Shown here: positions 1 to 30,000 of the stretch, in pieces
Layout: the number at the start of each line of letters is the position of its first letter
Numbering within the stretch: position 1 is the stretch's first letter
From: Mytilus trossulus
Lineage: Eukaryota
Direction of reading: 5' to 3'
DNA: 64,000 nucleotides
Assembly: GCF_036588685.1 (NCBI RefSeq)
Contig: NC_086375.1
Coordinates: 93,310,001 to 93,374,000 of the forward strand
Translations under genes and position numbers: made by a program
The notes under the pieces: generated by a model
Seen by the model: only the letters and a program-made list of their open reading frames with translations
Database searches by the model: none
Told to the model about the DNA's origin: nothing

Positions 1-51
1 TAGGTAAAACTTACAGCTTGTGAAAACGATTTGATCACAAAAGCAGTCAAC
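1..51 (-). CDS. TEP exon 26, partial (WLTAFVIKSFSQA...)
   Basis: catag acceptor at 52-54, WLTAFV motif; probably truncated by the window edge. Confidence 0.9.
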
Positions 52-3000: not shown

Positions 3001-6000
3001 AGTAAGGCCGTTATATTCACCTTTGATTTGTAGTTGCATAGTGCAACTACAAATCATTGTTCTGGCCTTTCATTGATATTGTGTAGCAAGCTTAGAGTTT
3101 TTTTCTGAAAATATGTTGATTAAAGAGAAACTTTTAGCAGAGACCACCCCTTCTGTTTGTCATTTTTTTTATAACTGTTTTAGTTCATTGATTTTTTTAT
3201 AATTTTGAAAAATTTGTTAATTTGAATTTAGATTTTTTTTTTTTTTGATTTTCTAACTATTTCAACCTATTTTAATAAATGTTGAATTAAGTGTTTCCTG
3301 GTAGAATTTTGTCTTATAAGAATATCAGTTTATATGTGAGGTTTACTTGATGATGGTCATTAATTAGTTCTGCACAGTGAAATGTTTTGAAGGAATTGTG
3401 ACCTTCATACAAACTATTTTATAGGTCATTTCATTAATTCACCAATGTTCTATTTCTTTTGAATCCTCTGGATAGGTTTTAATGGGATATGATACACAAT
3501 GTAGCACCAATTGAATAATCTGTTTTAATAAGATGCCAGTATTTCCTGAATACTTTTTGAAGTTATTCTGCTTGAAGATGATAATATGTAATAAATGATA
3601 CTTAACATCTATTTTAAAGTTTTTCCTTTTTCTTAATTTTATCTTTTCTGTCAAGGAATTTGATAGAATTTGTTTTACCAATTTCAGTTAATAAAATAGT
3701 CTTTCAATAAAGAGTTTTCTTTCAGGTTTGTGTTTTTATGTAAATGAATACCTTTGCCTGTAATATAGAATTGGGTTGGTTTGGGTTTTTATGGAGATGT
3801 TGGAATTTTTCTGTAACACCAGTTTTTTCATGTGTTTGTCTTTGAGTATTTCAAGGTCTAGAAATTTTATGGAATGATTATTGCATTTCTGAGTAAACTT
3901 TAGCAGGTAGTGTTGTTGAATAAATTGAGTGGTAGGGATGAGCTGGTCACCATGGTCACTATTTTGAGCTCTATTACATATTTCATGAAAAAAATCTTGA
4001 AATTTAGATGGAGGTGAAGTTTTTAACCTGCCTGTTTATTTCACAAGTGTCTGAAATTAATTAGATGTCAGAATCTTGTGATGTTTGTTAATGTTTCCAT
4101 CAGTGTGGTCAAATCAATTATCTCTAAATCAATTTTCACATGCAATCTTACAAGCTATTTATTTGCTGTTTGTGCTTTTGATCCTATTATTTTGACATTT
4201 TAACCTATTTAACATTAACAATATATAATAATGAACCATTACATTACTACAAATGTATCCTGAAAAGAAATTCTGATGTGTTTAGAAGAAATGGCAATGT
4301 ATCTTTCATCTGTTAGATACATGTATTATACTTTAATTTTATCTTATTTTCATAAAAAAAAACATTTATATGCTTTCATGACAGATTTACATTTTTGATA
4401 AGTAAAAATGTGATATGGGAACGGTTGGGTACATGCTGGATCCAAATTCTCATGGAAATAATGTTGTACATCATATATAATTATATAAACGGTAGTCCAA
4501 ATAATTATGACATCTTTGAAGGCTATTTTAGATTTTGCTTTAAACCTTCCGTCATTGAAAGGCGTAAAAGAAAAAATACAATAGCCTTTCAAGACCTCAT
4601 AGTTATTGTACAAATATGGCGTAATCAATTCCATCTAAGATTTGATGGTCAGTTCTTTATCAGTTTAATGATCTTTCATCTTGTTTAATGTGACACTTTA
4701 TACGATACTTTAGTTGCACAGTTGAACTGCAATAGTTTATCCAAATAATCTAAGACATTAATCAATGCCTCACATAAATTAAGAACATATTTATAGTACG
4801 ACCTTGTGAGAAACTTTATAGATTTGGTCAGTTATATTAGCTTGAAGTAACACATTGTTTTAAGAGTGGAATTTAGTAACGTTTTATATTGGAAGTTTTA
4901 TATGTGAAACATCAAATATATATTATATATACATGTACTTTTATAAATACGATTAAACATGTGAACATTAACTCTGTGACTTTGTGGTGATATATATATA
5001 CTACATGTATAGCTAGTTCCCTATATTAACGGACAAGATGCTGTTCTCGTTCCCGGATAATGACAAGTAGTGCCAACACACAAAAAACACAAGAGAAAGC
5101 CCCGTTATATCAATATACACGGGTAAACCTACAAAAATGTAGTTTTTAATCAGTAATAGGTTAGGACTAAGCTTTTAGATACCCTTCTCTTGGTTACAAC
5201 TGCATATTGTATAAACATGTATTACTGAGTAAATCCTGGAATTCCAGAAAATTTTGGCAATGGTGAAAATATTTCCATGGAATTTTTATTTCACAACTGA
5301 TGTCTTCCGTAAGGGGGTGGCTTATTTCTGGAATAGCATTGTTTTCCCAATAATAATTAAATCACTAATCTGTCATTAATCATGCAATCACTAATCCATC
5401 AGTAATCAGTCTTAACTCGATCAGTAATCTAATCGATCACTAATCCATCAGTAATCAGTCTTAAATCGATCAGTAATCTAATCGATCAAACTCCCGAGAG
5501 AGTTTGATCGATTACTGATCGATGACTTCATGTCATCAATCGATTACTGATCAAATATGATCGATTAGTGTTCGATTACCGATCTGATCGATTAGTTAAG
5601 TCTGGACAATAGCAACCAATATACTGGACACTTGATCTGTCAAACTAATTACCACGACGACAATTTATAAATAAAACATAACTATTTAATGATTTGATTT
5701 TCAACACAATTTTTTATCAAATCTATCGAAGTTGAAAAAAGTCCGGTTAACCGGTTAGCGTTTTTGGTATTCGGTATTCGGTCGTTCGACCGATTAACCG
5801 GTTAACTGGTTAACCGTTGACAACAGTATAATAAAGTCATTCTGATAGTAGTTAGTAGTTCTGACAAAAGGTGTGACAAAACGATTGTTTAACGAACAGA
5901 CGGACGAACAGATCGACGTATGGTTTGACGTCCGGGGTTTTTTATGGCAAAACAAACCCATGTAAGGATAGTTACATACATTTAACTTGAAAGTTATTTT

Positions 6001-9000
6001 GTCCCCTCAGTGTGTCAATCAGGGTTCGTATTTACATCATATTTATGTATACATATATATTAATCGTCATCACTCACATCATCACCTGTCATTGTTGTTG
6101 CCTTTATTATTTTGTATTTGTTGTTTTGTGTTTCTGCACTTATTCTTATTAGATTAATAATATACGATGGCTTCAGAGATTTCATTATATAAGCAGGCAT
6201 AATATAGGATAAACCTTACCAGGTAGTTCCACTTTTATCGTTGTTTCCAAAAGCGCTGAAAGATCCATCATCATGAACATAGGACAGTTCTCTTTGATAA
6301 CCTATTGAAGAGAACAATTATGATAACGTTAATGCATTTTTAGAGATATGCTTAGCTACATCTAAGTACATCTTGTTAATAGCTAACAGCTAATACAAAT
6401 TTGCATAACATTGATAAGTTATTGATCTGAGTACACAGTTATCGTCCTTTGATTTTCGTTGTCCTTTTCGTTGTCCACGAATATAGTCCATAGTGCGGAC
6501 AATGTATTACTTGCAAATTTATTTCTTGATGTGTTATGTCTTAAATAGCAGGAAGGGGATAAAATGGCACTGTAAAATAAAATTGATTTATGAATTTAAG
6601 AGAAGAAGAAAATATAACGTTTATTATTTTTGAAAGAAAGTTTTGACTTATGGAACATGCAGACACTTGCTTTTTGATGAAGCATATATATCTTGAACAT
6701 TCGTTTATTTCGATGAATTTTTATTCAAAATTCATTTTTATATTGATAACTCATTAATACAAAGAACCATAGGTTATCGCTCTACATTAAAGCACTAATG
6801 TAACATACGTTTTAACTAATTATGAATGCATTTAACGTGGAGTGGCTTATTAAACAGAGGCAGAAGGCGTAAATTATTCACACCATTATGAATGAATGAC
6901 ATATCATTTTAAAAATAAGTCGTAAATCAGACGTGCAGTTATTTTGTCCCATTAAGTCTGATAAGCTTGTAAGTTTGATATTTTAGGTCTATCGACTTAT
7001 TTGTATTACCTCCCTCTAAAATGCTCTCTACTCTATTTCGTACATCATTTGTAAGTCTGTTTGTTGTTTTCAGGTAAGAGCTGACGTAAACATTTGGAGC
7101 GAATCTGATCATGTTCTGTTCTCCACAGCCGTATGAAATCTGAAGGAGATCCTCCAGGCCGGCTAGTGTTGCCCCTAATAGGTCACCTGTGAAAAATATG
7201 TTACACGTAAAAATATGTTACACGTTTAGAGAATTGATTCACAGATTGTAATACCAGAAAATAAAATAATAAAATAAACATTCGAAATTATGTTGTATCA
7301 AGTGAACGGTGTAATCGTGTTCAATTATTTTAGGAAAGTTGATTTCTGATTCGTTTTATTCTTGTGACAAAACTGTTACCATGGTAGGAATATGACAGTT
7401 GTTATTCATTCGTTTAATATGTTTGAGCTTTTGATGTTTCCATTTAATTAGGGACGTGAATTTTCCTCGGAGGTCATTTTTTTTGTAATTATACTTTTTT
7501 GTAGGCAATTTCTTACTGTAATTGTTCAAGTAACACAATATTTCTGCTGGTTTATTCTGAAATTTCTTCTTCTAACTAATTTTGTATCTTTCGTTAGTTA
7601 TTTTTTTAAGTTTTATTGTGTATTAAGTACATTATAACTGCAATGAAACTTTTTTCATTTTTTTTGCCTCACTTAGTCGTATGCCAGTAGGTTTTTTTTG
7701 TTACTTTTTATTGCATTAAAGCATGACTTGTTAAGAAAACCCGAAATCTGTTTTTGAAACTATGATTGTTATGGAATTAAGATACTGGTGTTTAAATAAA
7801 AACATGTTGTTCAATATAATTAAAGTCAATACTCACCAATAACTTGAATTTTGATAAATTCTGAATCTTCAACAAGATTTGGCGGGAAAGACAAAGAAAT
7901 GGTCTCACGAACCCTTCCCCCTTGTCGGAGGTCAATAAGTAATGGAACGTTGTAGTTTTGTTTGATACCTTCGGCCTACAATTTTCAATAACATATATCT
8001 AATTTTAGGCTTAGTTTAAATTAACTCAATTTACTGGGGTTGTGACCGATTTTTTGCTACACGAAAAGGAGTTCACTATCAGATTTGAAGAGAAAAAACT
8101 GCAGTCAATTCAAAAATAAATTCCAAATGTTCATTGACTGAAAGTACATCATCATATTCTATTTAAATATAAAAATAGAAATAGAAATAAATTTCAAATG
8201 AAACAAATTTGTCGACTGATGGCATAGTTTTATTCTTCTGTTCAAGTAAACTGTTCAAACATTTTTTTCATATCTTAAGGCTTCGTAACAGACGTAAAAA
8301 AACAAATCAAAGAATAAAGATGAAAAATAATAATATGATGCACACCCGTCTTTAATTACAAGTATCCATAATTCTGTGAGTAATTAAATTACCTCTATTA
8401 GGAATTCACGCTGTACAGCGTCGGCTCCAATAGTAGATCTTGCAGTTCCGTCCAAAAGTATTTTACCAAGAGCTGTTGGTTTGAGAGGAAAATATACAGA
8501 CGCCACACTGTCTTCCTTCACTAACACAGACTGTTTAAAAACGAGTAAGTTTTATTGGTAAGTTTGAAGGAAATTATTCTTTATGCCAGTGTCTGAAGGG
8601 ACGTTTAAGATTTAGGTGCCTATAACTTGTCTATAACTAGTACAGTTTAAGCTAGGGATTTCGTAACCAAATTCTTAAAACTCATACCAAATCAATCATA
8701 GACAACCAGATTTGGCATTTTGGCTGTACATGAGCAAAATCAAAAATGGCATTTAACATATAGTTTTAAGGATGATGTTCTTGAGAACTGCAAACACTCT
8801 TAAATTGGTGCTTTGTGTCTTTAATGTGAGTTGTATAATATTGTTCTTCTAGCTGATCTTTCGGGTTCAGTCATTTTGATTCTTACAAAAAACAAAAATG
8901 TTGGGCTATTAAGCAAACGTGTAATTAAATTTCTCTCAATATGCATGTTATATATATGGGAGTTTATAAGGAACGACATTAAATAAAAATAAACAACATC

Positions 9001-12000
9001 TAATGCTTTTGAAAAATGAATATAAAAAACTCTACTATTACAAATATAACAAAAAATATTGTATACTTCTTTTACATGACATACACAATGACATATATGT
9101 TAACAAATATAGGTCACCTACTGTGGACAACAACGCCTTATTCAAATAGAGTCTACTCTACAAAAGTGCAGTACTCTATAATAGAACACTCAAACTTGAG
9201 TGTTTTTATATGTTTGTACATGATAATAATTAGTATACCTATTCATTGATACTACACTATAAAATCATTATACAGCTACCTTTGTCCACCCGTCTGGGCC
9301 TGGATTGAAGTCGTTTCCGTTAGCATCAACAAAGGTAAAGTTAACATTGTTAGCAAGCTTTACAGAAACCTGGAAATAAACCACATGTTCAGTTTCCATG
9401 GATATATAACTAACCTAAAAGTTTATATAGCGTAAGAATCTTCAAGCAAGGAATTTTAGTGATACGTGTTTTGCTTGATTTAAACTTTGAGCCGTAGCTG
9501 ATTCGTATTTGTAAATAAAACAACATATTTTGAAGACACTTGGATATGACCACAAAGGTAAACGTTTCTTTGGAGTTGCAGTTGTTGTTCATGTGTATTG
9601 GCTTTTGATTTTGCCATTTGATTATGGACCTTCCGTTTTTAATTTCCCTCGGAGTTCAGTATTTTTACTTTTTCACTTTCGAGTGTATGAATAAAAGAAA
9701 AAAAGAGTACTTGGTAAAGAAAATGATATGTTACGTAGATAATCCCTAATTCAAAATAAAAATATGATAAGAAATGAAATTTTAGTAATTTGTACTCAAG
9801 CTAGGACTACTCCTCAATTTATCTGACAATGGGATGTAGTTCAAAACTTAGATTATGTATAACGTTAAATGACATCTTCTTTCTAACTGGCTTTCCATGC
9901 CCCACCTACGATAGTAGAGGGGCATTATGTTTTCTGGTCTGTGCCTCCGTTCATCCGTCCGTTCGTTCGTCCGTTCGTTCGTACCGCTTCAGGTTAAACA
10001 TTTTAGTCGAGGTAGTTTTTGATGAAGTTGAAGTCCAATTAATTTGAAACTTAGTACACATGTTCCTTATGATATGATCTTTCTAATTTTAATGTCAAAT
10101 TAAAGTATTGACCCCAATTACATGGTCCACTGAACAAAGAAAAAGATAGTGTGAAGCTCAGGTTAAAGTTTTTGGTCAAGGTAGTTTCTGATGAAGTTGA
10201 AGTCCAATCAACTTGAAACTTAGTACACATGTTAACTATGATATGATCTTTCTAATTTTAATGCCAAATTAAAATATTGACCCCAATTTCACGGTCGAGT
10301 GAACATGTAAAATGATAGTGCGAGTGGGGCATCCGTGTTCTATGGACACATTCTTGTTTCTCCATGTCTCTCATTCTAGACGACACCAGGTATACAGTTA
10401 TACAATTAGCACTAAATACGATTGAATAATTTTAACTCTGAACACAAAATATTTGCATACCTGGTAGTGCAATGCTTTGAAACATATCAATGGTAAAGGA
10501 GTAGATTGAAAAATCTAATGCAATTATTTATGTAATAATTTTTTTTATTGTTAAAAAAGTTACCCTCAAATCCATAGGTTACATGCTTACATGTCATAAC
10601 CAAGGAGTGACCAACTATTTCAAATTGATAGAATAAATATATGTTTGATTACTAAAAAGTAAAATTACAAAAATACTGAGCTCCGAGGAAAAGTCAAAAC
10701 GGAAAGAACTTATAAAATGACAAAATCAAAGGATTAAACACATCAAAAGAATGGACAACAACTTCATATTCCTGACTTCGTACAGGCATTTTCCAATGTA
10801 GAAAATGGTAGATTGAACCTGGTTTTCTAATCCTAAACTTCTCATTTGTACCACAATCGCATCAGTTTCAATTATATTGACAATTTTGCGTGAACAAAAT
10901 GTCACAAATAGGGGTACAAAAAAATCTTAAAACCTAATAATAAGATGTTATTATATGACTTTATCCAAATTTGAATCGCAGAGGTAATGCAATATAAGTT
11001 TTCATTTGTATGACATTAAGTTAAGTCTTGGCACCAAAATCATTCATAATGTTTCGCAGAAATTATTTTATTTCAAAATTATACATTTTCAAGCTCTCAC
11101 GTACAATTTCTTTTTGTTATCCATTAGAATCAGCAAAACAGTTGTTTGCGACCGTCAAATCTTCAATTGACGGTGACAACTGTACTGTTATTCCTTGAAT
11201 AATGATTTGGGAAGGGAGTATTGCGGTGAATTTTTGAGGGACAAGCAATCAAAACGTTCTCTAGATATTGAAATATGTGGTATTATTACCATTAAGACAT
11301 ATTTCCATCCATTCATTTTCAGCACTATTTGAAATAATAAGCCTTTTTAGTATTAATAAACACTTTTCATATGAATCATATTTATAAAACAATGTATCAT
11401 TTGATTTATTTCAATTAACTGGGCGGAGTTAAAACGGTTCGCTCATCATTGACCAGTCCATCTACTGATAGTTGTTTTTGGATAAACTCATCAATAAAGT
11501 GTCCATTTATGGTCATAGTAAATTCGTTTGGAGACACTGATAGATGATCACAAATCAATGATAATTATAACGGCAATCATTCTGATCACACACATCTTCG
11601 AATAGACTGTCATTGTACATTTTAAAACGTTAGCTCCGCCAGATCAGTTGAAATAATAATTGGGTTACAAGGTAGACGATAAATTGCATATGAACTCAGT
11701 TAAGGTACAAGTGACTCTTTTCTTTAAAAGCGTCCGTGTAACTCCATAAACAAGTGTCCGTGTAACACCCGTTATTGTACTGATTTTCTTTAGCTCCACT
11801 TGGGGCAAGGTTATAGAAACCTTAGAAATGTTAGTTATCCATACAGATAAGAGTAATGAACAAGTGTGTTTATGTTATTAAAAAAAATAGTCTCATCTAA
11901 ATTATGAGAGAACCTTTAAAATCAATATACTTTTACATCAACTTATACATTTAATATTTAAATAATTAAACTTGTACCTGTTGATCTTGGTCTAAGTAAT

Positions 12001-15000
12001 TGAATACTGTGGCTTGAACTATAATAACCTCCCCTCGTATGGCAGAATACGGAAGTTCAAAGCGCATGAAAAACCTTTGGAAAGTTGTTAACTGAAATAT
12101 ATTGTATTAACTTTCCTATTGGTATGTGTGTTATAAGTGCTCTTGAATGGATAAAATGATAAATTCTCTACAATTTGTTTTGCATAATATAAAATTAGTG
12201 TGCTGCTACAAAATTACATGATCACGTAATATAAAATGATAAATACTGCAAATTTTTCTTTTACAATTTCAGTTTTCATATTTCTCTATATGTAATTTTC
12301 TCTTTTACAAAAAATACAAATGTAATTGAATTTGAATTTGAATGGTGCAAAATTTAATCAGGATCTTCATAACACCCAGACGAATAACCGACTTATAAAC
12401 ATACCTTTGTTTAATAAAATATAATTCAATTTAGATGTAAACTTATAAAATATATTAATTACATTTGCAGTATTTGCAGCAACTCCGAGACCGGTGTTTG
12501 GATTAACAGCAAATGCTGATGCAATCCATTCTGTAATAGTATCCGGAGCTGTTGTTCTTATTGTTGCAGTTCCATCCGAACTGAAATGAAATTATGTTTA
12601 TTAATTAGGTATAATTGAATAGATTCAACAGTATAGCCGCATTATAATTAATCTAAACTTTGGAAATGTAACAACATAAAAACTTTAGGCACGTACATAA
12701 ACATAAGGAGATGTTTCATGGTTACAATAAGGCAACTATCCACATATAGTCAGCATTATAAACAAATATATTTCGTAAAATGAGAATATTTTGAACGGGA
12801 AAACAAATATAGGAAGATGTGGTGTGAGTGCCAATGAGACAACTATCCATCCAAATAACCATTTAAAAAAGTAAACCATTATATATCAATGTACGGCCTT
12901 CGGCACGGGAACTTGGTTCACATCGAACAACAAGCTATAAAGGACCCCAAAATTACTAGTGAAAAACCATAAAAAAGGGGTAACCAACGGTCTAATCTAT
13001 ATAAAAAAACGAGAAAAGAGAAACACGTATAAATTAGATAAACATACGACAACTACTGTACATCAGCTTCCTGACTTCTATAACTAACTTTGCGGTATGA
13101 GCTGATTATTTCTTGATTTGTTAATATTCCCAATGTTACGACATTCAAAAAATGTGCGCTTCTCCTCTTTTGCTAATTCATAATGCATGAGAAATCATAA
13201 TCTAACCAAATCACCTTCATAACTAAGACATGATCAAATATGATATTTTAATTAATCTTACCTTTCGAAACGAAACGATAATAGGTGAAACAGATGATTT
13301 TTTTTTGTATGTCCTACTACTCACCGATGTTTCTGTTATGTTGTCTGCGATTTAATGGTTGAATAAGATTATTCAAAATATTTTGTTGAAAATGTTACAG
13401 AATGATTTTATTTTTTTACTTTTAAATCCTCAATCCAATAGCGAAATCAAATAAAAGCTCATCAATTATTAAACGAATGGATAACAACTGTCATTTCTTG
13501 ACTTGATACAGGCATTATTATGTTTTTAGAAAAAATTTTGAATTTAACCAAGATAAACCTCTCACTTATATGACAGTGGCATAAAATGCCATTGAATTAG
13601 CAGCAATGTGTGAACAAAGCTAACAAATATAATAGGTACAAATGTTAATAAAAAAAGAAGAGGAAGGGGGAAGACAGCAGTCATTAGTGTGTTATAATCA
13701 TTAAAGAAGTAGATTAATAAAGGCAACAGTAGTATACCGCTGTTCAAAACTCAAAAATACATGGACAAAAAACAAAATCGGGGTACAAACCTAAACTGAG
13801 GGAAACGCATTAAATACAAGAGGAGAACAACGACACAACATTTAAATGTAACACACAGAGAAACGGACTAAGCAATAGACAAAATCCAATGAGAATAACA
13901 AATATAACATAAAAACAAAATCAAGAAAAACAAAAAGGTAAATAAACAAAGCTCATTAACAAAAACGAAAGAGACGAACACAATACCGGGTAATTTACCA
14001 TAATACTATAACACAATGACGAGATGTATAATATCAAGCCACGTCAAATGGATATTACCAAAATTAGACTCAAAAGTAACAAGTTCTTCAATCCAATAGC
14101 GAAATCAAATAAAAAGCTCATCAATTATTAAACGAATGGATAACAACTGTCAATTCTTGACTTGATACAGGCATTATTATGTTTTTAGAAAAAATGTTGA
14201 ATTTAACCAAGATAAACCTCTCACTTATATGACAGTGGCATAAAATGCCATTGAATTAGCAGCAATGTGTGAACAAAGCTAACAAATATAATAAGTACAA
14301 ATGTTAATAAAAAAAGAAGAGGAAGGGGGAAGACAGCAGTCATTAGTGTGTTATAATCATTAAAGAAGTAGATTAATAAAGGCAACAGTAGTATAAAGTA
14401 AAATCACAAAAATACTGAACTCAGAGGAAAATCAATTTGGAAAGTCCATAATCACATGGCAAAATCAAAAAACAAAACGCATCAAAAACGAATGGACAAG
14501 AACTGTCATATTCCTGACTTGGTACAGGCATTTTCAAATGTAGAAAATGGTGGATTAAACCTGGTTCTATAGCGCTAACCCTCTCACTTTAATAACAGTC
14601 TCATCAAATTCCGTTACATTTACATGATGCGTTAAATAAACAGTCACAATCAATAAAATAGTCAAAATATGGGAACATCAGTCATCATTTGTCGTTCAAT
14701 GTGCATACAATAGTTATCAAAAGTACCTGGATTATAAACAATTTTAAATTTTACAGAGGCAATGAGCGCAGACAGGGTTAAAAAATCAAAAGTATGTAAG
14801 AATAAATTACAGAAATCGAACTAGTCCAAAAGTTATACATAGAATTTATGAGAATCCAAAACTTTTAAAAGGAACAATTTAACAGGACACAAAAACCTAT
14901 CCACGAACACATGGATCTACTTGAGTGTCCGACGTCAGAAAAAATATATACGTCACATAAATTTGTCGTTCAATGTGCATACAAACAATTTTAAAATTTA

Positions 15001-18000
15001 CATAGGCAATGTACGCATACAGGGTTAAAAAATCAAAAGTATGTAAGAATAAATTACAGAAATAGACCAAGATTCAAACTAGTCCAAAAATTATACATAG
15101 AATATATGAGAATCCAAAACTTTTTAAAGGGAACAATTTAACAGGACACAATAACATCTACTGTCTAAGAACACATGGATTGATTTGAGTGTCTGACGTT
15201 AGAAAAATTATATACGTCACATAAATTTGTTGTTCAATGTGCATACAAACAATTTAAAAAAAAATTTCATAGGCAATGTACGCATACAGAGTTAAAAAAA
15301 TCAAAAGTATGTAAGAATAAATTACAGAAATAGACCGAGATTCAAACTAGTTCAAAAGTTATACATAGAATTTATGAGAATCCAAAAATTGTCAATTCCA
15401 CTACGCCATTGATTGATTTTGACGTTTGTGGTTCAATGTATACAAGTAATTCATAATAGAAATATATCATAATGACATATTATAGACAAATATCATACTG
15501 ACGGGATCTTTTAAAGTACAGAGTCACGTTATAAGCACAAAAGAAATACAAAGAGTCACATATACAAAACAAATCACCAAAAAATGAAAGCCAATACAAA
15601 CACATTGACGAGATGTATAAGTACCGAGCCACGTCAAACGGATATCACATAAAACCATTCAACAGTAAAAGTAATCTTAATAATAGAACAAAAACAAATA
15701 AAAGAACAATAAAACATGTTGTTAAGATGATACACAACATCAGTACGCAAAATCTATACATCAAGACCATCGTGTATTATTTGAAAAGTTGATATACCGC
15801 TGTTCAAAACTCAAAAATACATGGACAAAAAACAAAATCGGGGTACAAACTTAAACTGAGGGAAAAGCATTAAATACAAGAGGAGAACAACGACACAACA
15901 TTAAAATGTAACACACAGAGAAACGGACTAAGCAATAGACAAAATCCAATGAGAATAACAAATATAACATAAAAACAAAATCAAGAAAAACAAAAAGGTA
16001 AATAAACAAAGCTCATTAACAAAAACGAAAGAGACGAACACAATACCGGGTAATTTACCATAATACTATAACACAATGACGAGATGTATAATATCAAGCC
16101 ACGTCAAATGGATATTACCAAAATTAGACTCAAAAGTAACAAGTTATAATTTACAAAGACAAATTAGAAAGAAAAAAAACTGTAACATTTAATTAAGATG
16201 ATAGACAAAACATCGTCGTACCCAGAAACTAGACTTCAAGACCGTTGTGTATAATGTGTGAAGTTAATACACAAGTTTATCAAAAAGCTCTTTGTATCGT
16301 TCAAAAAACTATTTTAGTAAAAATAATAGACGTTCTTAAACATAACTGATGCATCACATTCCTGTTAAGACACTAGTGAAGGTCTGAGTTGCAACTTCAG
16401 GCTAGTGAGTACCTAATGCATTGGGAAAAGTATATCCAATATGCAGGTGCAGTTGGAGTATTGCTTTTAAAGTCTCGGAAACTGATTTTTTTTTTTAAAA
16501 GTCTAGTTTGTTATCAGATGTAGGTAACAGCTTGTTTGTAGTACTGTATCTGCTTTAATCTATTGGTTTAGAACGTAGCTTAACAATACATTATTTACAA
16601 TAAAGCTCTTGCACTCTACAATACGTTGTTCATAAAATTAAAGTATACCGAACCACAAAAAAAAAAACGGAAAGTTCCCAAGCAAATATCAAAATCTAAA
16701 ACCTCAATAAACATTATCAAACAAAGTCAGCATAAGGTTATTTAGTTTTTTATTTAGACTTTATATTGTTCCAATTCTTGCAGGTTTGTACAACTGGTGT
16801 TGACCATTTGAGTAAAATTGAAGTTGAAGAACTAAAGTAATATTCCAACTCAAAGAATACTCACAATCTCCTAAATCAACACGAAATGCATAATCTGCTT
16901 ACTTGAAATCGGGTTATCCCGTTAGAATTCTATTATACATGAAAAACATAGTGACCACCGAAAACCAATGACTGGAAATCACGAACCCCTGGAAAAACCT
17001 TGGGTATACATTTTTACACAACATATCAATTTTCATATCTACAAAATCATCAAAATGGATATTTATCATCAGAAGGTTTACATATAATAGCTTCATTCCT
17101 CACCTTGTTGTTTTATTGACCCATATCCAGGTTTCCGGAAATTTCTTTCGAGTTCTCCCAACAGATGCCAATTGAGCAGATGCTGCTCCTTTCTCAGCAG
17201 ATAATGCCCAACGTGCCCATTCAGCTGAAACAATTTACCCTAGTATTTCCAAATATAGCAATCGATAAGGACCTCTTGATGATTGAAAAGTGAAAGGAAC
17301 GATTTTTTATTATATATAATGCATGCGTATCCAGCAAACAGATATGTACCACATTCAACCTTTGCAAGGCAAAATTTATAGTCAAGCACATTCACCTTGT
17401 ATTGTCCCATATCCATGTTATGCGTACTACTTTCCTTTCAACTTGAGAAGAAAAGTCAATAATAAACCCTATAATGATCATATTACAGAAATTGATCAAT
17501 TGTAATGGTAATGTCTCACCCTGTAGTGCTGTTTACCCACAACCATGTTTCTGGAAAATTCTTCCGTGTTCGTGTGGGACTAGCAAGACTGCCACTTCCT
17601 GCGAATCCTGCAGCGCCCCCTCCTAAGCCCCCTCCTAAGCCCCCTCCACCATCATCAGCGAAGGATGCAGAGGGTCCAGGTTGGCCACGGTGTCCAGAAG
17701 AAAACATTCGCACGGCTGAAATTAAATGAATGCTCACCAGCATGCAGAATTTATCCATTATTATGCTGTAAAAAAATACTCCTAGTTTAAACAAGGGAGA
17801 AGGTCCGGTAAAGGCCGAATTATCCTCAAATTTAAGATTCATCTGACGAAAAATTGTGTACACTTTTTAAACACTTAAGTGTCTATTTTATTTAAATCAA
17901 TTAGTTTCTGTGAAAGCTTTTAACTGATTTAGTCATTAAAAACGCACTAGTTTTTGTCTGAAATGAAAGTGGTCGCATCCTTGTTCATCCTCAACCTTTA

Positions 18001-21000
18001 TATATATTATGTTCTATCGTAAAATACAACTTGCATTTCAATATTAAGGATGAACACGAATGCTGCCACTTTCGTTTTACACGAGAACCGTCTAAAATTT
18101 AACTAAAATGCTAGAATTGTGAAGTTTTCAGTAATTTCGCATGACTTAATGGTGCTAGTACCCGATACTTGTGCATGGTAGGGTCAATACAGCCCATATT
18201 AATGTAGCAGAAGCATTTTACTGTGCAATAAATAACTAAAAGTTAACATTTTAACAATTTTGTAAAACAGCTATACTTTGGGGCCAAAAAGGGTCTTACT
18301 GGACCAACTCCTTTGCTATTCAGTCATTTTAATTCGCAAATACTTTTCTTCTTCATTGCTTTATATAGCCCAACAGGACGACAATCACCAGTATAAATCA
18401 TATACAGCTACACGTAAATCCAACTTCACTCTGGCAAATAAGATGAAAAAACATGCTACACACTAAATCACTAAATAAGCTAATTTTAAGGAAAATAAAA
18501 GGAAGCTATATAACACCAAATGTTATTGTAGAAGGAATATCAATTGTTTTTTGTATTAAACCTTAATGAAAAATCAATTTTGGTCCCTAATTAATCAAGT
18601 ATGGTTAGTGTACATAACCTTTATACAGTGAAAAACTTATAATTTATTGGACTATCAAAGAAATCTAAGAATATATGATAAAACTATACAAACGGTAAAA
18701 ACATAAAACTAAATGCAAGAATTTAAACAGATCATGACTTAACTTTGAAAGTGAAAAGCAATCAATTTTCTCAAACCATTAGGTCGTTTGCTACTCTCAC
18801 TCGACAAAAAGATCTATATTAAGACTCGGATCTGATATTTTGTTATAATGGTATGCAGACAACCTGATAATCAGATCACATACTCTAAATTCTAAAATTG
18901 GAAAAAAATACTGATGTTGTTTTCTGCAAGTATCAGATAATCGATAGAATATTTGAAAGTCCATCAGTAACCTTATATGAATAACACTCTAAAGTTTAAC
19001 AGTTCAATTGCCTTATCAATGCAACCGGCTAAAGAAACAATCGAAGTATTACATTTTAATTCTATAATAAAAAATTCAAGTGTTAACTGGATTTTTGTCT
19101 GATAAAACCGCTTCGTTTAAAAAAAACGGACGGGTTATAACAACTTATCTTGTCATGTAGGTAATTATGTTATCCCTGTTACAAAATTATATATGTATGT
19201 GTTTGCAGATAAAGATAAAGTAACCTTAAAATAAATACTTATTTGAAGAATTATACTCTTTAAAATAGGTTTCTCGATTCGAAACATAAAACGTAACACG
19301 ACGAATGTCACCAGAGGAGGACGAATTTGTTTTATGAAACTCTGATCTGTGTTTCTCAGTCTTTTCTTATTTTTTTGGTATTTATTGGTGTCTTCTTTGC
19401 AATTCTTATTTGGCTATTTTATTGATAGACCGCCTTCTTATTTATTTATTTTTTAACTTAGTGACATGTATTACACTTGTTTAGCAGATACGGGACTTTC
19501 CATTTTGTATTTTATTCGTAGTTCGATATTTTTGTTATTTTATCTTTTATAATACATGAATAAACAAAAGAGATATTAGCGTTTTATTATCGATGTTAAC
19601 CTATGTTTCATTAGGGCACCCAGTTCTGAGCAATAACCACCATTTCAAACCCCGGTGTATTGTTTGGGCTGTCACATTTTAATGTTTTCCTAGTGTTATG
19701 GGTTAACATACTTACATTGTGGAGGAATATACTGATAAAGCAAAGCATCTGTTAATACATAAACACCAGCTCCCTGTTGATAAAATAAACCATGTACAGT
19801 AGTTGTCGTTTGTTTATGTAATATATACGTGTTTCTCGTTTCTCGTTTTTATATATAGATAAGACCGTTGGTTTTCCCGTTTTAATGGTTTTACACTTGT
19901 AATTTTATGGCCCTTTATAGCTTGTTGTTCAGTTTGAGCCAAGGCTTCGTGTTGAAGGCCGTACATTGACCTATATTGGTTTACTTTTATAAATTGATAT
20001 TTGGATGGAGAGTTGTCTCATTGGCACTGATACCTTATCTTCCTTTATCAGTTTTTAGTGACAAACTATTCTGAAAACAGTTCGACAATTATGAATAAAT
20101 AAAGGCAACAGTAGTATACCGTATATAGTATATAGTATGAAATGTTCCTGAAAAAAACTTAAGCATATATCATTATATTTATTTTTGCTATGCAAACCTT
20201 TTTTCCCCTATGCAATAATATTTTATCTAAAAATGCATCTGACAAGGACATTTAGATTTGGTCATTGTTGTTTTTTTGCAACTGCCTGGTCATTTATTAT
20301 TGACTTTTGAGTTTTATTATCACTTTGGTATCTTTCGCCTCTCTTTGTATACCCCTTCTTTTGTATTTTAAATACATGTACTTGAAATTGTTCAGAACTA
20401 AAGCTTAATTGTATTTTTTTATAAAATGTGCTGTTATACTTACATTAAAAATCGAGAATGCATCCCTGCCGTAAACAGGTCTTGGTAACCAGAAGTCCCA
20501 ACTACTTCTTGAAAAGAATCCCGAGTTGCCATAACTTTGAAGTTCATTCAATACCTATGAATATTTAAAAGTGTTTTCTTTTTAAATACAATGAAATCAG
20601 TCAATAAAACTTATAAACTTCAGTGTTCCTGATGTTTCGTTGTCTTTCTCTTTTAGATGATGTGTTTCCCTCAGATTATTTTTCTCTGAATCGATTGATG
20701 TCGTTTAAACAGCGGATTACTACTGTTGCTTTTTAATACCACATATTTTGATTTTTTTTTTATAAAAAATATAATATCCAAATAAGTCTTTAAGGCCGTA
20801 CTTTAACCTATAATGGTTTACTTTTTAAATTGTTATTTGGATGGAGAGTTGTCTCATTGGCACTCACAACACATCTTCCTATATCTATTTAAGAGTGCTC
20901 GCGAGTATAAATCATTTTTTTTCTAATATAAGATTTCGCTATATTTTTCTATAAATGAATTTTATCATATACTTAACAGAAAAATGGAAAAAAATGAGGT

Positions 21001-24000
21001 CACCGTTCATTAAAGCTCACAATCTGCCTCCGAAAGAAGCATACATTTTTGTCCTTTTTTTCTGTTGGACTAATAGGAGAAATAGAGGTAAAATCGAAAT
21101 AAAAAAATAGCCTTATTACAGAAATGTCTTTACTTTTACAAATATTTAGTGTGTGTAAAGTTTATTTGAAAACATTAACAAAATATATAGGTCACCGATG
21201 AGTTCAAAAGGATATTAAAATTTTATTGCAAAAAATGTCATTTTTGCACCAAAGGGAGATAATTTGGACTTTTTCATTGATATAAACATTTTTTGAGTGA
21301 TCTGGGGCCAAACCGAATCGATTTTTTGGTTGATTTTTGTACCATATCATTAAGTAAAAACTAATAGTTTTATAAATAAAATTTATTATATACTTAGTAG
21401 TAAATACAGATATATTGTATGTGAAATACAATCAATGGCAAGTGTGCTGTATCAGCCACCCGTGATGATATCATTATCAGCACGATTGCAAAAGCTTTAT
21501 AACATCTTTAATATGTATGACGTCACGTCATCGATAGCAGTTACTGTTGTCAAACCTATAATCTGTATGACGTCATTTCAAACCTCATCATCTGTATGAC
21601 GTCATGTCACATAAAAACATCAACTTGAGGTATATGTATATAATAAAGTGTATATGATATGGCCTTTTCAATATCACACACCGTATTTACCCTCAACCAA
21701 TATAACCCCTCGAGCAGAGCTCTTGTGATTATATTGCTGTCTCGGGTTAATACGGATGCGATATTGAAAACGTTATATGATATTCCCTATTCATCATGAA
21801 AAAAAAATGTTCATTATTCATTATTGGATTCATGGTTTAATGGTGTCCATTTTCGGTGAATTTGTTATGTTATTGATTAGAGTGCCATCCGCTTTTAGGT
21901 GCGATATTTTCTCATTGTGTTTAATGCTCATTGGTGGCATTGGGCTATTGTTTTCACTGTCCTTGGGCTCGGGTTGTTGTCTTTGACACATTTTCCGTTT
22001 CAATTCGTAAAGGAATCGAAATTAATGCGTCATGTTTTGTTAGCTGCTTCGAATCACTAAATGAGTATTTTTGTGTAGTGATATCATCTCCTGATTTCGG
22101 TGATAGAACATTTTNNNNNNNNNNNNNNNNNNNNNNNNNNNNNNNNNNNNNNNNNNNNNNNNNNNNNNNNNNNNNNNNNNNNNNNNNNNNNNNNNNNNNN
22201 NNNNNNNNNNNNNNNNNNNNNNNNNNNNNNNNNNNNNNNNNNNNNNNNNNNNNNNNNNNNNNNNNNNNNNNTGATATCATTTCCTGATTTCATTAATAGA
22301 ACACTTTTCTCGACTGCTAGACCTTTGAGAGAGAGAGAAAGAGATACTTACATATTGTGTAGTGATTTCATTAATAGAACACTTTTATCGACTGCTAGAA
22401 TATTGAGAGAGAGAGCTTACATCTTGTGAAGTGATATCATTTCCTGATTTCAATAATAGAACACTTTTATCGACTGCTAGAACATTGACTAATGAGTTTG
22501 GATCCGCTGTCAATCCGACTTCTACGTCATCACCTGGCTTAGCTCGTCTTGTGTTGAAGTTAATGTTCACCTACAAAGTACGCAAACAATCAGTATAGTG
22601 ATCTAACACTATAGAAAAATAACATTTTTTAACTTAATATGTTTAACATATCTATAATGACAATATGAACGCAATGAATAAAGTATCATGTATTGTTCAA
22701 GAAGGTGAAGTGAGAAGTGAAGGGATGTTTTCCTTCAACATTTATATATTTATGCTTGAAAAAGGAACAGATGGGTAACGAGTAATTAACATTGGCATTA
22801 AAGTGCGAGGTTTGGCATGCCACAAAATCAGGTTCAACCCACCATTTTTTTTCTTTAAAAATGTCCTGTACCAAATAAAGGCAACAGTAGTATACCGCTG
22901 TTCAAATCTCATAAATCCATGGACAAAAAACAAAATCGGGGTAACAAACCAAAACCGAGCGAAACGCATTAAATATAAGAGGAGAACAACGACACAACAC
23001 CGAAACGCAACACACACAGAAACGGACCAAGCATCAGACAAAACACCGCGAGAATAACAAATATAACATGAAAACCAAATACATGAATTTGGGATAGACA
23101 AGTACCGTGCCACGTCTTATCTCAATATCTCAAAAATAAGAGGAAACACAAACGACTCGACGTTAAAATGCAACACACAGAGAAACGAACAATAATATAA
23201 CAATGACCATCTTCCTGACTTGGTACAGGACACTTTTAAAGGGGAATAAAAGTGGTGGGTTGAACCTGGTTTTATGGCATGCCAAACCTCGCACCTTAAT
23301 GGCAAAGTTGAATATAACATTGAAATAACAACATAATAATTCCAAGTCAAGAACATGGACATTGTTATATTATAGTTCGTTTCTGTGAGTGTTACATTTT
23401 AACCTTGTGTTTCCGTCGTGTCTCTTATATTTGAGTGTGAAGTCACATTACTATAAGACGTGTCACGGTACTTTTGTATCCCAAATACATGTATTTGGTT
23501 TTGATGTTATATTTGTAATGCTCATGATTATATTTAATGCTTTTCCCTCAGTTTTAGTTTGCTACCCCGAATTTGCTTTTTGTACATAAATTTACGAGTT
23601 TTAAACAGCGGTATACTACTGTTGTCTTTATTTATTTCCTTCTATTGTGATTATGCTTTCCTTAAGGTTAAGGAACCATTTTATTTATTACTTTGTATTC
23701 ATTTCGAAATCATTTGCCTGCAGAAGTACAGATATAAAAAAAATGTTCAAGTGTTTGAGGATTCTGTATGAAATCTTTACCAAATAAAAGTGTGTAATAT
23801 GGCATGTTAAAACTTCATATCAGCAGTAACCGATAACATCATGTTATACATATTGTATCATCTATAACTAGTATTGTAACTTGGCTTTTGTTACTATTGC
23901 TACTTAATATCGATATTTCTAATAACTTATGATAACAGTGCAATCCTGTACCACATAATCAGGCAGGACAAAGAAATTTACATTGCAATAGACCAATTTG

Positions 24001-27000
24001 GTACCTCGTTATAAGATATTACTAATAACTAACGGATATAGAGCAATTCTGTACCACATTATATAATAGGAAAACGACAAATTAACATGAAAATAGAGGA
24101 ACTCCATAAAACTTTTCAAGACAACACGAAAAACTAATAAAACAAAACAATTCCGTACTACATCGTATGATAGAACAAACAAATTAACATGTACTAAAGC
24201 AATTACAAACAAATTAACATGTATTACTATGGAAATAGAGCAATTCCGAAACTTATTTTTAAAAGTAATGTATTCAATTAATGATTACTAACCGACTACA
24301 ACAAATACTTACTTATTCAATATGCCCTCTACAATGGGAAATGTAATTGCAATCAGCTTATTTTTATCTTTGAGTTTGACTGCCCCTCTTGTATCTTTCG
24401 CCCGTCTTCTACAACTTACTTTAATATTAGACATATCTTTAATATTAATTGTAATTGCATCAACTACAACTTACTTTATTTTTGAATATATCCTCAATAG
24501 GAAACGTAATGGCATCAGCTACAACTTCGCCATTTCGTCGTCTTACATAGTAAATCAGTAACTTTGCTTGAGGAATCATTGCATAATTGATTCTGAGGGT
24601 ATGATCATGCTGCTTTCTGTTTCTCATACCGAATCGTCCATTTTGTACAAGTGATCCTTTTGAAAAAACCTATGGGAATGATTTTGATTTGAATGAATAA
24701 TTTTGATAAAAGATATCCTGAAAGAAGACGAACATATATTTCGTATGAACTCTTTTCGAAAATATGATGAAAAGCATATCTGATAAACAATATTCATGAC
24801 AAAATAAAAAGCTCACACATTATTGGTGACATTAAAATGCCGACTGGTAACCCGTTGAATGCTCTATGAAATTAAACGTGTAATACTAGCCCTGAACGTG
24901 TCATTTCATTTACGGCTAGCCCGAATATTTCTGTACTTTTTTTCCTCGAAAAATGAGAATATTTTATAGTACTATGTTCCTAACAAATCTCCTGGTGTTA
25001 AATTTAGGTCTCATTATATTCATTTTTAAATATTTATAACGATATAAGGTTGCCTATTTTTTATTTTGGTAAAATTCTGACCCCTTGTAGTTATCATTTA
25101 AAAAGCCACTAGTATGTACTAGTTTTGCGGATTACAACTTGAAACGTATAAACAAATCTACCCCTTACATTAAACCAATAAACATAATTATGAATCGATA
25201 GAATTATAGTAGTTATGCATACTCCATTTAATTAATATTTCAGATAAATATTTCGTGGCGTTCGCAATAACATACTTTGTAATTGCAGAAGCGGATCATT
25301 TCTGTTACTTTTATAACCAATGGTAATCTCTGACCAGGCTGAATATAAATGAGAATAAATACTTTTAAACAAATAAATACAATGTGATTGATACAGAGAT
25401 ATCCTTTTTCATTGCATATTGCCTTTTTGCAGTGATCTGTCTAAAGAAAAGTTTCTATTCGAATTCGGTATGAATGGTCATTATGCTACATCAACACTTT
25501 AAAGAATTGGTGATGATTTTTTTCTTATAAGTTTTTCTTCAATATTCAAATAAACAGCGAAAATTATTTCGTAACGTGTATTTATGAATACTTGAGGTTG
25601 AATACATCTTCGGTGCTCGTATGTTTCTTCCTTTTATGTATGTATTTGTTTCTTCCTTTAATGTATGTATTTGTTTCTTCCTTTTATTTTTATATGTATT
25701 TATGTATGCATTCGTTTCTTCCTTTAATGTATGTATTTGTTTCTTCATATCATTTATTCTATTGCGTTGTGTTAGGTACTCCGAAGCCTGATATGATGTC
25801 TTCGTATTTAACTCTCAAAGAAATATTGCATTTGTTGATAATGTGACTAAAAAACCGTAAGTGTAAGTTTTTATTGTATGTTGAATATATGAAAAGAATT
25901 GTTTTGAAATCTGTTTTAAGTTTCATTTGAATAAACAGGATTGATTTGACTATCAACAATGCCTGCTCCTTTTGAAGTTTACCTGAGCTTTTTGGTTATT
26001 TTTAACTTCAACTTGTATGTAGTTTCTGCTAGGGGATTCTGCACGGGACAAATATCTGGACGCTCTCGATTTGCGATAGACAGCCTGTTTAAAAAAATGT
26101 ATATAATGGGATTGTATATAAGTACATAGACACAACCGATTCAAATTTAAATTTTGAAAAAAACTAAGCATTTGTACAGTTTTAATAATTGTTTAATCGC
26201 AACAAAGATTTGAAAATATTTATTTTTAGTTTCATGTATTTTACTGTTAATGAACCAAACGTTTTTATAGTTAAGAAGGATATAAATAGTCTAGATTTAT
26301 AATGTTTTCACATCAACTAATTTGTCAAACTTTCAAAGAATTTTAAGAAATTTTGTATTAGCTTGTTTTTGAAACAGATATATATAGATATAGGAAGATG
26401 TGGTGTGAGTGCCAATGAGACAACTCTCCATCCAAATAACAATTTAAAAATTAAACCATTATAGGTTAAAGTACGGCCTTCAACACGGAGCCTTGGCTCA
26501 CACCGAACAACAAGCTATAAAGGGCCCCAAAATTACTAGTGTAAAACCATTCAAACGGGAAAACCAACGGTCTAATCTATATAAACAAAACGAGAAACGA
26601 GAAACACGAATATATTACATAAACAAACGACAACTACTGTACATCAGATTCCTGACTTAGGACAGGTGCAAACATTTGCAGCGGGATATAGTCTAGAAGT
26701 AAAATTTGGAAGATAAATTTTGTTTGATTTTTCCATCTTTTACTAGTAAGAAGACTATTTTCTATACTCTCAACTTTTTAAACATCTTATATTGTGTTCA
26801 CTCTTAGTACTATTCTTTTTAGACCCAAGCTGATCTTTAAAATATAAAGATAGCATCTATAACACAATGTCATAGTTACTGATAAATAAACTTACTTTAA
26901 GTTTACATAACACTTTATCACTGATAGCAGTAATAACAGATGAGACACTACAGGGATTCGCTGACGCCGTTACGAATGTTTATATAAATAGACTAGAAAT

Positions 27001-30000
27001 AATGGTCATTTGTTAATCGAATAATATCTGTTTGATTAATATATCTTTAAATACCTCTATTATACCAGACTGTGCTGCTTTAGGGAATTTAGCTGAGAGT
27101 ACAATTATTCCTGATTCTGGGATCTGTTCCAAACGTGTCCACAATACTTTACTGTCTGTGTTTATTGGTGGTGGAAATGACGGAATAGGCCTAATCTGAT
27201 CACCACGAGATCCAGGCGCCCCTTGCGGCCCAGGCTGTGGTTTCTGTTTACCAGGCACTGTATACGTTACCGTGATGTTTACAAATCCCAATGGTGGTTT
27301 TAATGGACTGTCGTCTCTCTGTGTGGCTCTTAACTAAAATGTACCATTGACATACAAAGATAAAGACGAACACTTAAACATTTTAAGGTAAAATACATAC
27401 ATTTAACATTGAAAACACCCTTATTGAGAAGTACCAGTCACTCAAATAACAATGACAAGTAAGGATTTGTAGGATGACTATCACTATGACAACTGTCTGC
27501 TAGTGACCGAATTGTGCGGATGTAAGTATCTTTAGGTCAGCTACAAGTCATTTTATTTTATCAAATATTGACGTATTTAGTGAGTAATGTTTTAGAATGA
27601 ATTTCTTGTATCATCACTCTTTCACGGAAATCCTTTAAGAACACCGCCAATTTTTGAATGAGGAAACTACTGAACAATAGTACCCAGAAAGTGTCCAAAA
27701 GCTGAACCAAATTTGCAGCGCAAATTGTTTTTCATGCCGTCAATATTTTAATAGTTTTCAATTATATTCACAAATATTAAATATAAATATATGTGCAAAC
27801 TTTATCAACCAAAGTCTACAAACTAAATGATATTCGAAAGTCGAAAACAAATCGACATGACTATATACTATAGACTGAGTAACACCACATTCTGAATTTT
27901 TAGTGACTTTCCCGTTCAACGTCTTTAATGTATACGATACAGTTTTGATCCCATAATTAAAATTTACTAATAGCTTATTTTTTATCTGTTAAAATTACAT
28001 TTAATATAAAAAAAAATATACCATCATGAGCTACTTTTGGGTAAAATGAGACATACATTTCAGATATTTGCTCAAAATTAAATAGACACAAGTCTAAATC
28101 AAATTTTTTTTAAAAACCGCAATATTCACTTTTTCATGAAAATTGCAAAATAATCTTGATACGTAATCCAACCGAATGTTATTTTAAAAAAGAGGATATA
28201 TGAACTCGTTTAAAAGTAAAATCAAATTGAAAGATAAAACAGTCGAAAAAATACATCCTTTCCCGATAGTCACAGTTTGACGTTAGCAACGTTATTATTT
28301 CCCCTGTAATTTATCGTATGCTCTTTCTCAAGCTTTCAAGATGTAACGTTACAATAAGATACTTCGTTTTTTTAACATTAGCGATCAATTAACATTACAC
28401 TATTGTTAATTTTGTCTTCTCATACTTCGACATATACATGTTGTTAGCGTCACCTTCAAAACATGCATCATCCGCAGTGCAACACTTCAATGAAAACAAA
28501 CGTCACAGTTACGAAAAGGATAAAGACCACGAAAAAATGCCACTAGTGAGGTCGACGATCTACACATCGTATTGGTCAATAAATTCGTATAAGTGACTTT
28601 TAATATCTACTCACTATTATTGTATAGTCCAATCCAGGTTTGAAATTGCTAGACATACTTGAGGAAAACGTAAGTTTTTCTGGTGTGTCATAGATTTGGA
28701 CATTTCCTGTATCATTTGCTGAGATGCCTGTAATTGATTCTGTTACTTTAGCTATAACTTCTATGTAAGTTCCCAGTTTCGGTACAATTTCACTCATCAA
28801 AACTCGGATTGTAGCTTTTCCATTTATCTACATTATATAATAAAAAAAATCAACAGTAGAATGTCTACGATTAATTATCTTACGAAAGACTGTCTATTAG
28901 CATCCTTATGTAATTAGCACTCTGAAAAGACTTAAAGGCAGGATCTTGTCTATTTACATCATTATTGAATTTGCACTCTGAAAAGACTTAAAGGCATATT
29001 ACTGTCTATTAGCCTCGTTATAGAATGGCCACTCTGAAAAGACTTAAAAGCATGATACTGTCTATTAGCCTCATTATATAATGGGCATTCTGAAAAGGCT
29101 GAAAAGCATGATATGGTAGCTCTAAAATACCTGTTTATGCAAAACAATAAATAAATTATGCAAATCAATTATGCTTGTTATCAATTCTAATTGTAGGATT
29201 CACTTTTGTATTATTTGTACAGACTAATAACAATAACAGTCTATGTTTGAACTTGAACATTGTATGTCTATGTATTAGGCCGTGTTCACATTGACCTAAA
29301 TTCGGTGTTGTGTTAGTGTAACTCACACGTAAACTAAACACAATTGCGTTCCCATTGATAAAACTCAATGTTTACATGTAGTTTAAATCATGTTTTACCT
29401 ACACACAGTCGATAGTCGATGTAGGCCTTGTGTAGGTTAGGTGACACAAAACCAGGCATTTAGGACATTAGTTTTATCGTGTATTTTAAGGGAGCTTACT
29501 TAAGGATGTAGGAATATAAGGCACATCAAAAGTGCATGTTCTTTAGTGTTTGTGAATTGAAACTGGAAAATGGTTGTTTTATAGGTCTTGAAACTCCGTA
29601 AATATATGCATGCAAGACAATGATATCAATCCCAAATTGATAATCATAATTTTGTTAAACTAAAATCTCAATCATGCACTGTGGTTTAAAACTTTAAAAT
29701 AACTTTCTCCAAATATCTTGGATTTCTATCAAACTTTGACAGAAGCTAAATGTTTATGATCATAAGATAATACCCGAAAGTAAAGATTGTAAAAAAAATC
29801 CATTTTTCCCTATATTACATTTGTACTTATAAACATGATAAATGGACTAGTTTTTTTCCCAGTTAACATTACATACACTCTGCAGTTAAAGTTTTTAAAA
29901 CATTAGATTTTATAAACCATCCTGGATTTTTACCCAATTTTGACAGAAGCTTCTTATAGTACTAGTCAAAGGATAGTATCTAGAGGAGAATTTTAATATT

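Follow-up and report, generated by a model that had tools for sequence, protein, structure and literature searches.

The analysis of a 64-kb window of the Mytilus trossulus genome (the whole stretch of DNA that was analysed, to which all positions without a prefix refer) points to an array of alternative bait exons in a gene that encodes a secreted, CD109-like thioester-containing protein (TEP). In the reading that we favor, and that we consider rather probable, the cassette 18A is the default bait exon, the cassette 18C is a second functional one, the cassette 18B is a degenerate copy, and every translatable message carries one cassette.

The gene that hosts the cassettes encodes the RefSeq protein XP_063430935.1 (P0151), named "CD109 antigen-like [Mytilus trossulus]", of 1461 aa. 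This protein was reached by searching protein representatives with the thioester exon and then running a word search with the best of the full-length matches. When P0151 was aligned with the window by tblastn, 24 HSPs were obtained, most of them with 94-100% identity, and 17 introns, including the one that joins 19716 to 17715, yield the RefSeq protein exactly. The gene lies on the minus strand and is partial in the window (1..47446, minus strand), as shown by the tblastn matches and the 17 exact introns. The exon with the start codon is located at 47446-47390 (minus strand) according to the P0151 gene model; the window thus holds residues 1 to ~1055 of 1461, and the 3' end of the gene lies past window base 1. 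In the intron just downstream of the exon 22570-22421 there are several tandem partial copies of the 3' end of that exon (21950-22420). They read LAVDKSVLL-x-KSGNDI-like, flank both sides of the assembly gap 22115-22271, and may stem from tandem duplication at this site or from a problem in the assembly.

The thioester exon (7008..7186, minus strand), defined by its motif, by tblastn and by exact introns, contains an intact GCGEQ thioester motif, placed at residue 950 of P0151. The Pfam analysis of P0151 revealed, all of them over the curated cut-offs, the domains MG2, MG3, A2M_BRD (466-599), A2M (722-813), TED (928-1242) and the receptor-binding domain. The initial annotation had proposed a thioester protein gene, and the GCGEQ motif together with this domain series bears this out: the product of the gene is a member of the thioester-containing protein/alpha-2-macroglobulin (A2M) superfamily. 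The anaphylatoxin and C345C domains were absent from the Pfam result on P0151, and in this respect the mussel protein is unlike complement C3, C4 and C5. The closest solved structure is that of human CD109 (PDB 8s3o), with E = 3.9e-209 over residues 13-1456. Human CD109 (PDB 8s3o, 9fx2) and the mussel protein are alike in their domain order, in the thioester and in having a bait region ahead of the FPE-x-W strand. The mussel model differs from vertebrate CD109 in that, judged by eye, it has no C-terminal GPI-anchor signal. The C-terminus of P0151, which falls outside the window, ends ...CGPNNCEEVKRR and, also by eye, is hydrophilic and without a GPI-signal-like hydrophobic tail. Since a signal peptide is present in the RefSeq model, this tail, as read by eye, suggests a secreted CD109-like TEP and not a GPI-anchored CD109.

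The variable part of the cassettes falls in the Pfam gap between the A2M_BRD and A2M domains (residues 600-721). In the PDB search, the best matched stretch of TEP1, C3/C4/C5 and activated CD109 starts at residues 708-715, just before FPETW. The position of the gap and the starts of these matches indicate that the variable part sits at the classical bait, or protease-sensitive, position, and they agree with the initial annotation, in which the segment before FPETW had been taken as the bait region. The conserved end of the cassettes is the first strand of the next domain, i.e., the FPE-x-W strand of MG6.

All the exons that concern the array are on the minus strand. The constitutive exon that precedes the cassettes (exon 17; 19716..19773), with exact junctions on both sides (20444 to 19773 and 19716 to 17715), leaves at its end one base of a split codon, with the donor GT at 19715-19714. 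The cassettes follow in the order 18A (17520..17715; 196 nt; acceptor TTTCAG, donor GTGAGA), which is the only annotated one, 18B (17396..17441; 46 nt; acceptor CTCAAG, donor GTGAAT) and the unannotated 18C (17104..17224; 121 nt; acceptor TTTCAG, donor GTGAGG). They are separated by introns of 78 nt and 171 nt. The constitutive exon after the cassettes (exon 19; 12464..12580), established by its exact junction, its donor at 12463 and Pfam, opens with the last base of the split codon and encodes SDGTATIRTTAPDTITEW..., which is part of the A2M (MG6) domain.

The lengths of the three cassettes are all 1 mod 3, and all three have AG/GT borders. In each of them, two bases finish the split codon at the start and two bases open the next codon at the end, so that only messages with one cassette are translatable. 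A script check showed that the frame remains open through exon 19 with exactly one cassette, whichever of the three is placed between exons 17 and 19. With zero cassettes a stop appears 7 codons into exon 19, and with any two or all three of them the first cassette is directly followed by a stop, since in the shifted frame 18B and 18C both start x-TGA. For exon 17, the cassettes and exon 19, the coordinates, phases and splice borders given in the initial annotation were re-derived here and stand unchanged. Its statement that none or two cassettes break the frame is confirmed by the stops that the script located, and the comparison of 18A and 18C likewise upheld the observation that both end in RTRK-x-FPETW-x-WVN-x-TT after unrelated N-terminal parts.

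A six-frame motif scan of the 64-kb window detected three FPETW-like sites, all of them at the cassettes. No further cassette was found between exons 17 and 19 by motif, by GC islands or by a scan for phase-compatible open AG...GT segments, the GC-rich islands in this interval being 18A and 18C only.

The cassette 18A comprises a Gly-rich variable part followed by the conserved RTRKNFPETWLWVNSTT end. Its GC1/2/3 values are 0.59/0.70/0.36, and the sole RefSeq isoform of the gene uses it. On a splice-site PWM made from the gene's own sites, which are only 18 and provide weak evidence, the acceptor of 18A is strong and its donor is weak. The Gly-rich part contains a short in-frame tandem repeat, GGLGGGLGGG (17590-17660). 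Cassettes of the 18A type are present in the orthologues of M. edulis and M. galloprovincialis and in every related Mytilus model examined, and the length of the 18A-type linker differs strongly among the proteins of these two species and M. trossulus. In view of this variation across three Mytilus species, the bait diversifies in the germline too, by slippage-type indels. The M. edulis isoforms X1 and X2 were considered as an 18A/18C pair, given that they differ by 25 aa, which equals (196-121)/3, but it is at the C-terminus that they differ, with an 18A-type cassette in each, and this candidate was discarded.

When the M. trossulus genome was searched with 18C, other TEP genes proved to contain arrays of this cassette type. 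A paralogous CD109-like gene at C14:55285735-55300438 (55.286-55.300 Mb) has 8 intact bait cassettes over ~15 kb, with the same layout as in the window gene, i.e., a variable part, K/R-x-R-K-x-FPE-T/S-W-x-W, 2 nt and GT. Its RefSeq isoforms X1-X4 (XP_063414098 to XP_063414104) differ only by the cassette that they carry, so that four of the eight cassettes are annotated as used and the other four are unannotated, whereas the three cassettes of the window gene fit within 0.6 kb and only one of them is annotated. Another TEP gene, at C14:72098782-72117869 (72.098-72.118 Mb), contains five cassettes of the same type, and FPETW-type matches were found at three places each in C2:1.064-1.075 Mb (~1.06-1.08) and C6:11.381-11.389 Mb. 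Bait-cassette arrays are a family-wide feature of the M. trossulus genome, and an isoform pair of the same kind as that of the C14 paralogue at 55.3 Mb was found in Mya arenaria.

The window gene also has two tandem paralogues, at C3:93184544 and 93251981, ~143 and ~75 kb from its cassettes. Each of them has a single Gly/Asp/Asn-rich cassette, with exon 19 only ~1.1-1.3 kb downstream, which implies that this subfamily can do without extra cassettes. In the window gene, the intron of 4.5 kb that separates 18C from exon 19 is filled with repeats (13453-16092), which comprise two pairs of 99%-identical direct repeats of 284-300 nt (13453/14112 and 13733/15793) as well as a tandem array of ~260 nt (14733-15395). 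These repeats look like transposon-derived material, and they make this intron 3-4 times longer than its counterparts in the tandem paralogues.

The cassette 18C has an Ala/Trp-rich variable part of 22 codons followed by the conserved RTRKKFPETWIWVNKTT end, and it presents the full motif and the 2-nt-plus-GT ending common to every functional-type cassette found in the M. trossulus genome. Its constraint was tested on 17 and 22 codons, in comparisons that gauge past selection and not present use. Over the last 17 codons, which are the conserved ones, 18C and 18A differ at 8.5 of 11 synonymous sites and at 4.5 of 40 non-synonymous sites (pS 0.77, pN 0.11, Fisher p = 4e-5). Compared with the one cassette that each of the two tandem paralogues has, pN is 0.05 for 18C and 0.06 for 18A, indicating that 18C has gathered no extra replacements. 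In the unique first 22 codons, GC1/GC2/GC3 are 0.64/0.68/0.23, a periodicity that was matched by none of 6457 intronic 66-nt windows. Judged by these substitutions and this codon composition, 18C bears clear signs of long-term selection as coding sequence, and it looks like a real coding exon that is absent from the RefSeq annotation.

When 18C was searched as a 41-aa query in database proteins of 23-72 aa, no candidate was found. The control search with 18A matched only P0283 and a paralogue fragment, and P0283 is an ORF from genomic DNA of a related mussel (2252-nt Logan contig) with intron-derived residues at its start. Searches of the protein database therefore do not sample the transcripts of this gene, and the negative result for 18C is uninformative. 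A degenerate 18C pattern gave no match in a metagenome scan. For the isolated 18C peptide, AlphaFold predicted a helix of low confidence at residues 6-20 and, with a better score, a hairpin across the conserved end, a result that is only suggestive.

An alternative that we find possible, although unlikely, is that only 18A is spliced and the gene yields a single protein, 18C being a long-functional relic that is now skipped and 18B an older relic. RefSeq has one isoform here, although four isoforms that differ by cassette came out of the same annotation run for the C14 paralogue; nevertheless, since half of the intact cassettes of that paralogue are unannotated, the absence of 18C from RefSeq is weak evidence. 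The acceptor of 18C, which on the small PWM of 18 sites scores under all 18 real acceptors of the gene, would also agree with skipping. The donor of 18C is strong, and this combination of a weak acceptor and a strong donor fits a regulated alternative exon equally well as an unused exon. The single cassette of each tandem paralogue speaks for this alternative, as does 18B, which shows that cassette decay occurs at this locus. On the other hand, the frame, the AG/GT borders and the invariant motif of 18C are intact, with no excess of replacements with respect to 18A, and thus any silencing of such an intact and constrained cassette must be recent.

The cassette 18B holds a degenerate conserved end only (ERKVVRITWIWDNT). 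It shares 87% identity over 23 nt with the end of 18C, has a 6-nt (two-codon) deletion in the conserved strand, and reads VRI in place of FPE at positions that none of the other 15 motif cassettes listed (11 distinct) has changed. Its GC content (0.37) is intron-like and it has no codon periodicity. On the 18-site PWM its AAG acceptor scores under all the real acceptors, with a strong donor and a good pyrimidine tract. To judge from this erosion, 18B is probably a partial copy, now decayed, of an 18C-like cassette, and most likely it is not productively used. The use of all three cassettes, in which 18B would give a short 'baitless' isoform without the variable segment, appears improbable to us. 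The phase and length class of 18B are right for it, its pyrimidine tract is good, its donor is strong, and the 17-18B-19 frame is open; against it stand the change to VRI of an FPE that no other cassette examined in the genome has lost, the loss of two codons, the intron-like composition and the poor acceptor.

To a more elaborate scenario we give little credence: the window gene, alone of the three tandem paralogues, would keep in 18C an Ala/Trp-rich and possibly helical bait, unlike the Gly-rich baits in all the related Mytilus models, that would have a distinct recognition and be switched on only under particular challenge, 18B providing a rare baitless, non-cleavable decoy or regulator. 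Finally, it is extremely improbable that the resemblance is due to chance or to an assembly artefact with no real extra exons, since nothing specific supports it (the assembly gap 22115-22271 lies 4.4 kb upstream), the assembly contains the cassette region once and without breaks, no second copy or haplotig of it having been found in the own genome, and motif, phase, splice borders and substitution pattern are all concordant.

According to the reading that we favor, with 18A and 18C as the functional cassettes, an old tandem exon duplication would have produced the three cassettes. Messages with none or several of them, for which the early stop was computed, would presumably be removed by nonsense-mediated decay, and the inter-cassette introns of 78 nt and 171 nt may add steric limits. 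A search for competing RNA pairings of the docking/selector type detected only short AT-rich inverted repeats, as chance predicts. Given its strong acceptor and its annotation, 18A would be the default choice. With 18C included, the Gly-rich, flexible and length-variable linker would give way to an Ala/Trp-rich segment, placed upstream of the basic and invariant RTRK-FPETW junction, and the resulting isoform would be a TEP with a different protease-sensitive or recognition segment. We infer that 18C is spliced today and that the cassette choice is regulated. In analogy to A2M, TEP1 and CD109, it may be the variable part that sets which proteases or conditions trigger the cleavage and the activation of the thioester, and the isoforms could then have a switchable protease specificity, as had been suggested initially.

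If 18C is used, this Mytilus TEP gene would have at least two isoforms with different protease-sensitive segments, the one-isoform RefSeq gene model would need correction, and there would be more evidence that bivalves diversify their innate immune sensors via exon switching. The locus also presents side by side the birth, maintenance and decay of cassettes, with 18A in use, 18C conserved and 18B decayed. The gain is incremental, because molluscs and arthropods already provide published cases of the principle and a paralogue within this genome is annotated with it.

That the bait region is spliced alternatively is already known for Drosophila Tep2 and scallop TEP, as the initial annotation had stated and as PMC7016707 documents. 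In the snail Biomphalaria glabrata, BgTEP2 contains 12 exons that are mutually exclusive and share a conserved C-terminal part, the assembly predicts 8 variants for BgCD109, of which 4 were recovered as transcripts, and BgA2M has 3 variants (PMC7016707). These three genes share with the mussel gene the tandem, mutually exclusive central exons that vary in length and composition and have a strongly conserved C-terminal part. They differ in number and in the kind of data: the 12, 8 and 3 variants of Biomphalaria include transcript-recovered ones, whereas the mussel gene has three cassettes, probably two of them functional, and the extra ones are known from genomic sequence alone. The design of a variable N-terminal part and a conserved C-terminal part is found in 18A and 18C, while 18B retains the degenerate C-terminal part only.

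Among bivalves, the CfTEP gene of Chlamys farreri is cited in PMC7016707 as having 6 mutually exclusive variable-region exons and 7 isoforms (Zhang et al. 2009, Dev Comp Immunol 33:1070), whose expression, according to the same citation, depends on sex and pathogen. As far as these citations describe it, CfTEP is alike in being a bivalve TEP with exclusive variable-region exons; expression is shown for CfTEP, whereas the mussel array is read from the genome. Drosophila Tep2, with 5 bait-region isoforms, and shrimp A2M-2, with 6 variants, are also cited there, and on that account they resemble the mussel gene in that a bait-like exon is alternatively spliced in a TEP/A2M protein. The arthropod arrays of Tep2 and A2M-2 were presumably gained independently. 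Our literature search found no paper on bait-cassette exons in Mytilus. Of the features of arrays of the BgTEP2, CfTEP and Tep2 type, tandem paralogous bait exons with the same phase at both ends and a frame that breaks unless one cassette is included are present in the window gene. The mussel locus is a further example of this published design, which RefSeq already annotates for a paralogue within the M. trossulus genome.
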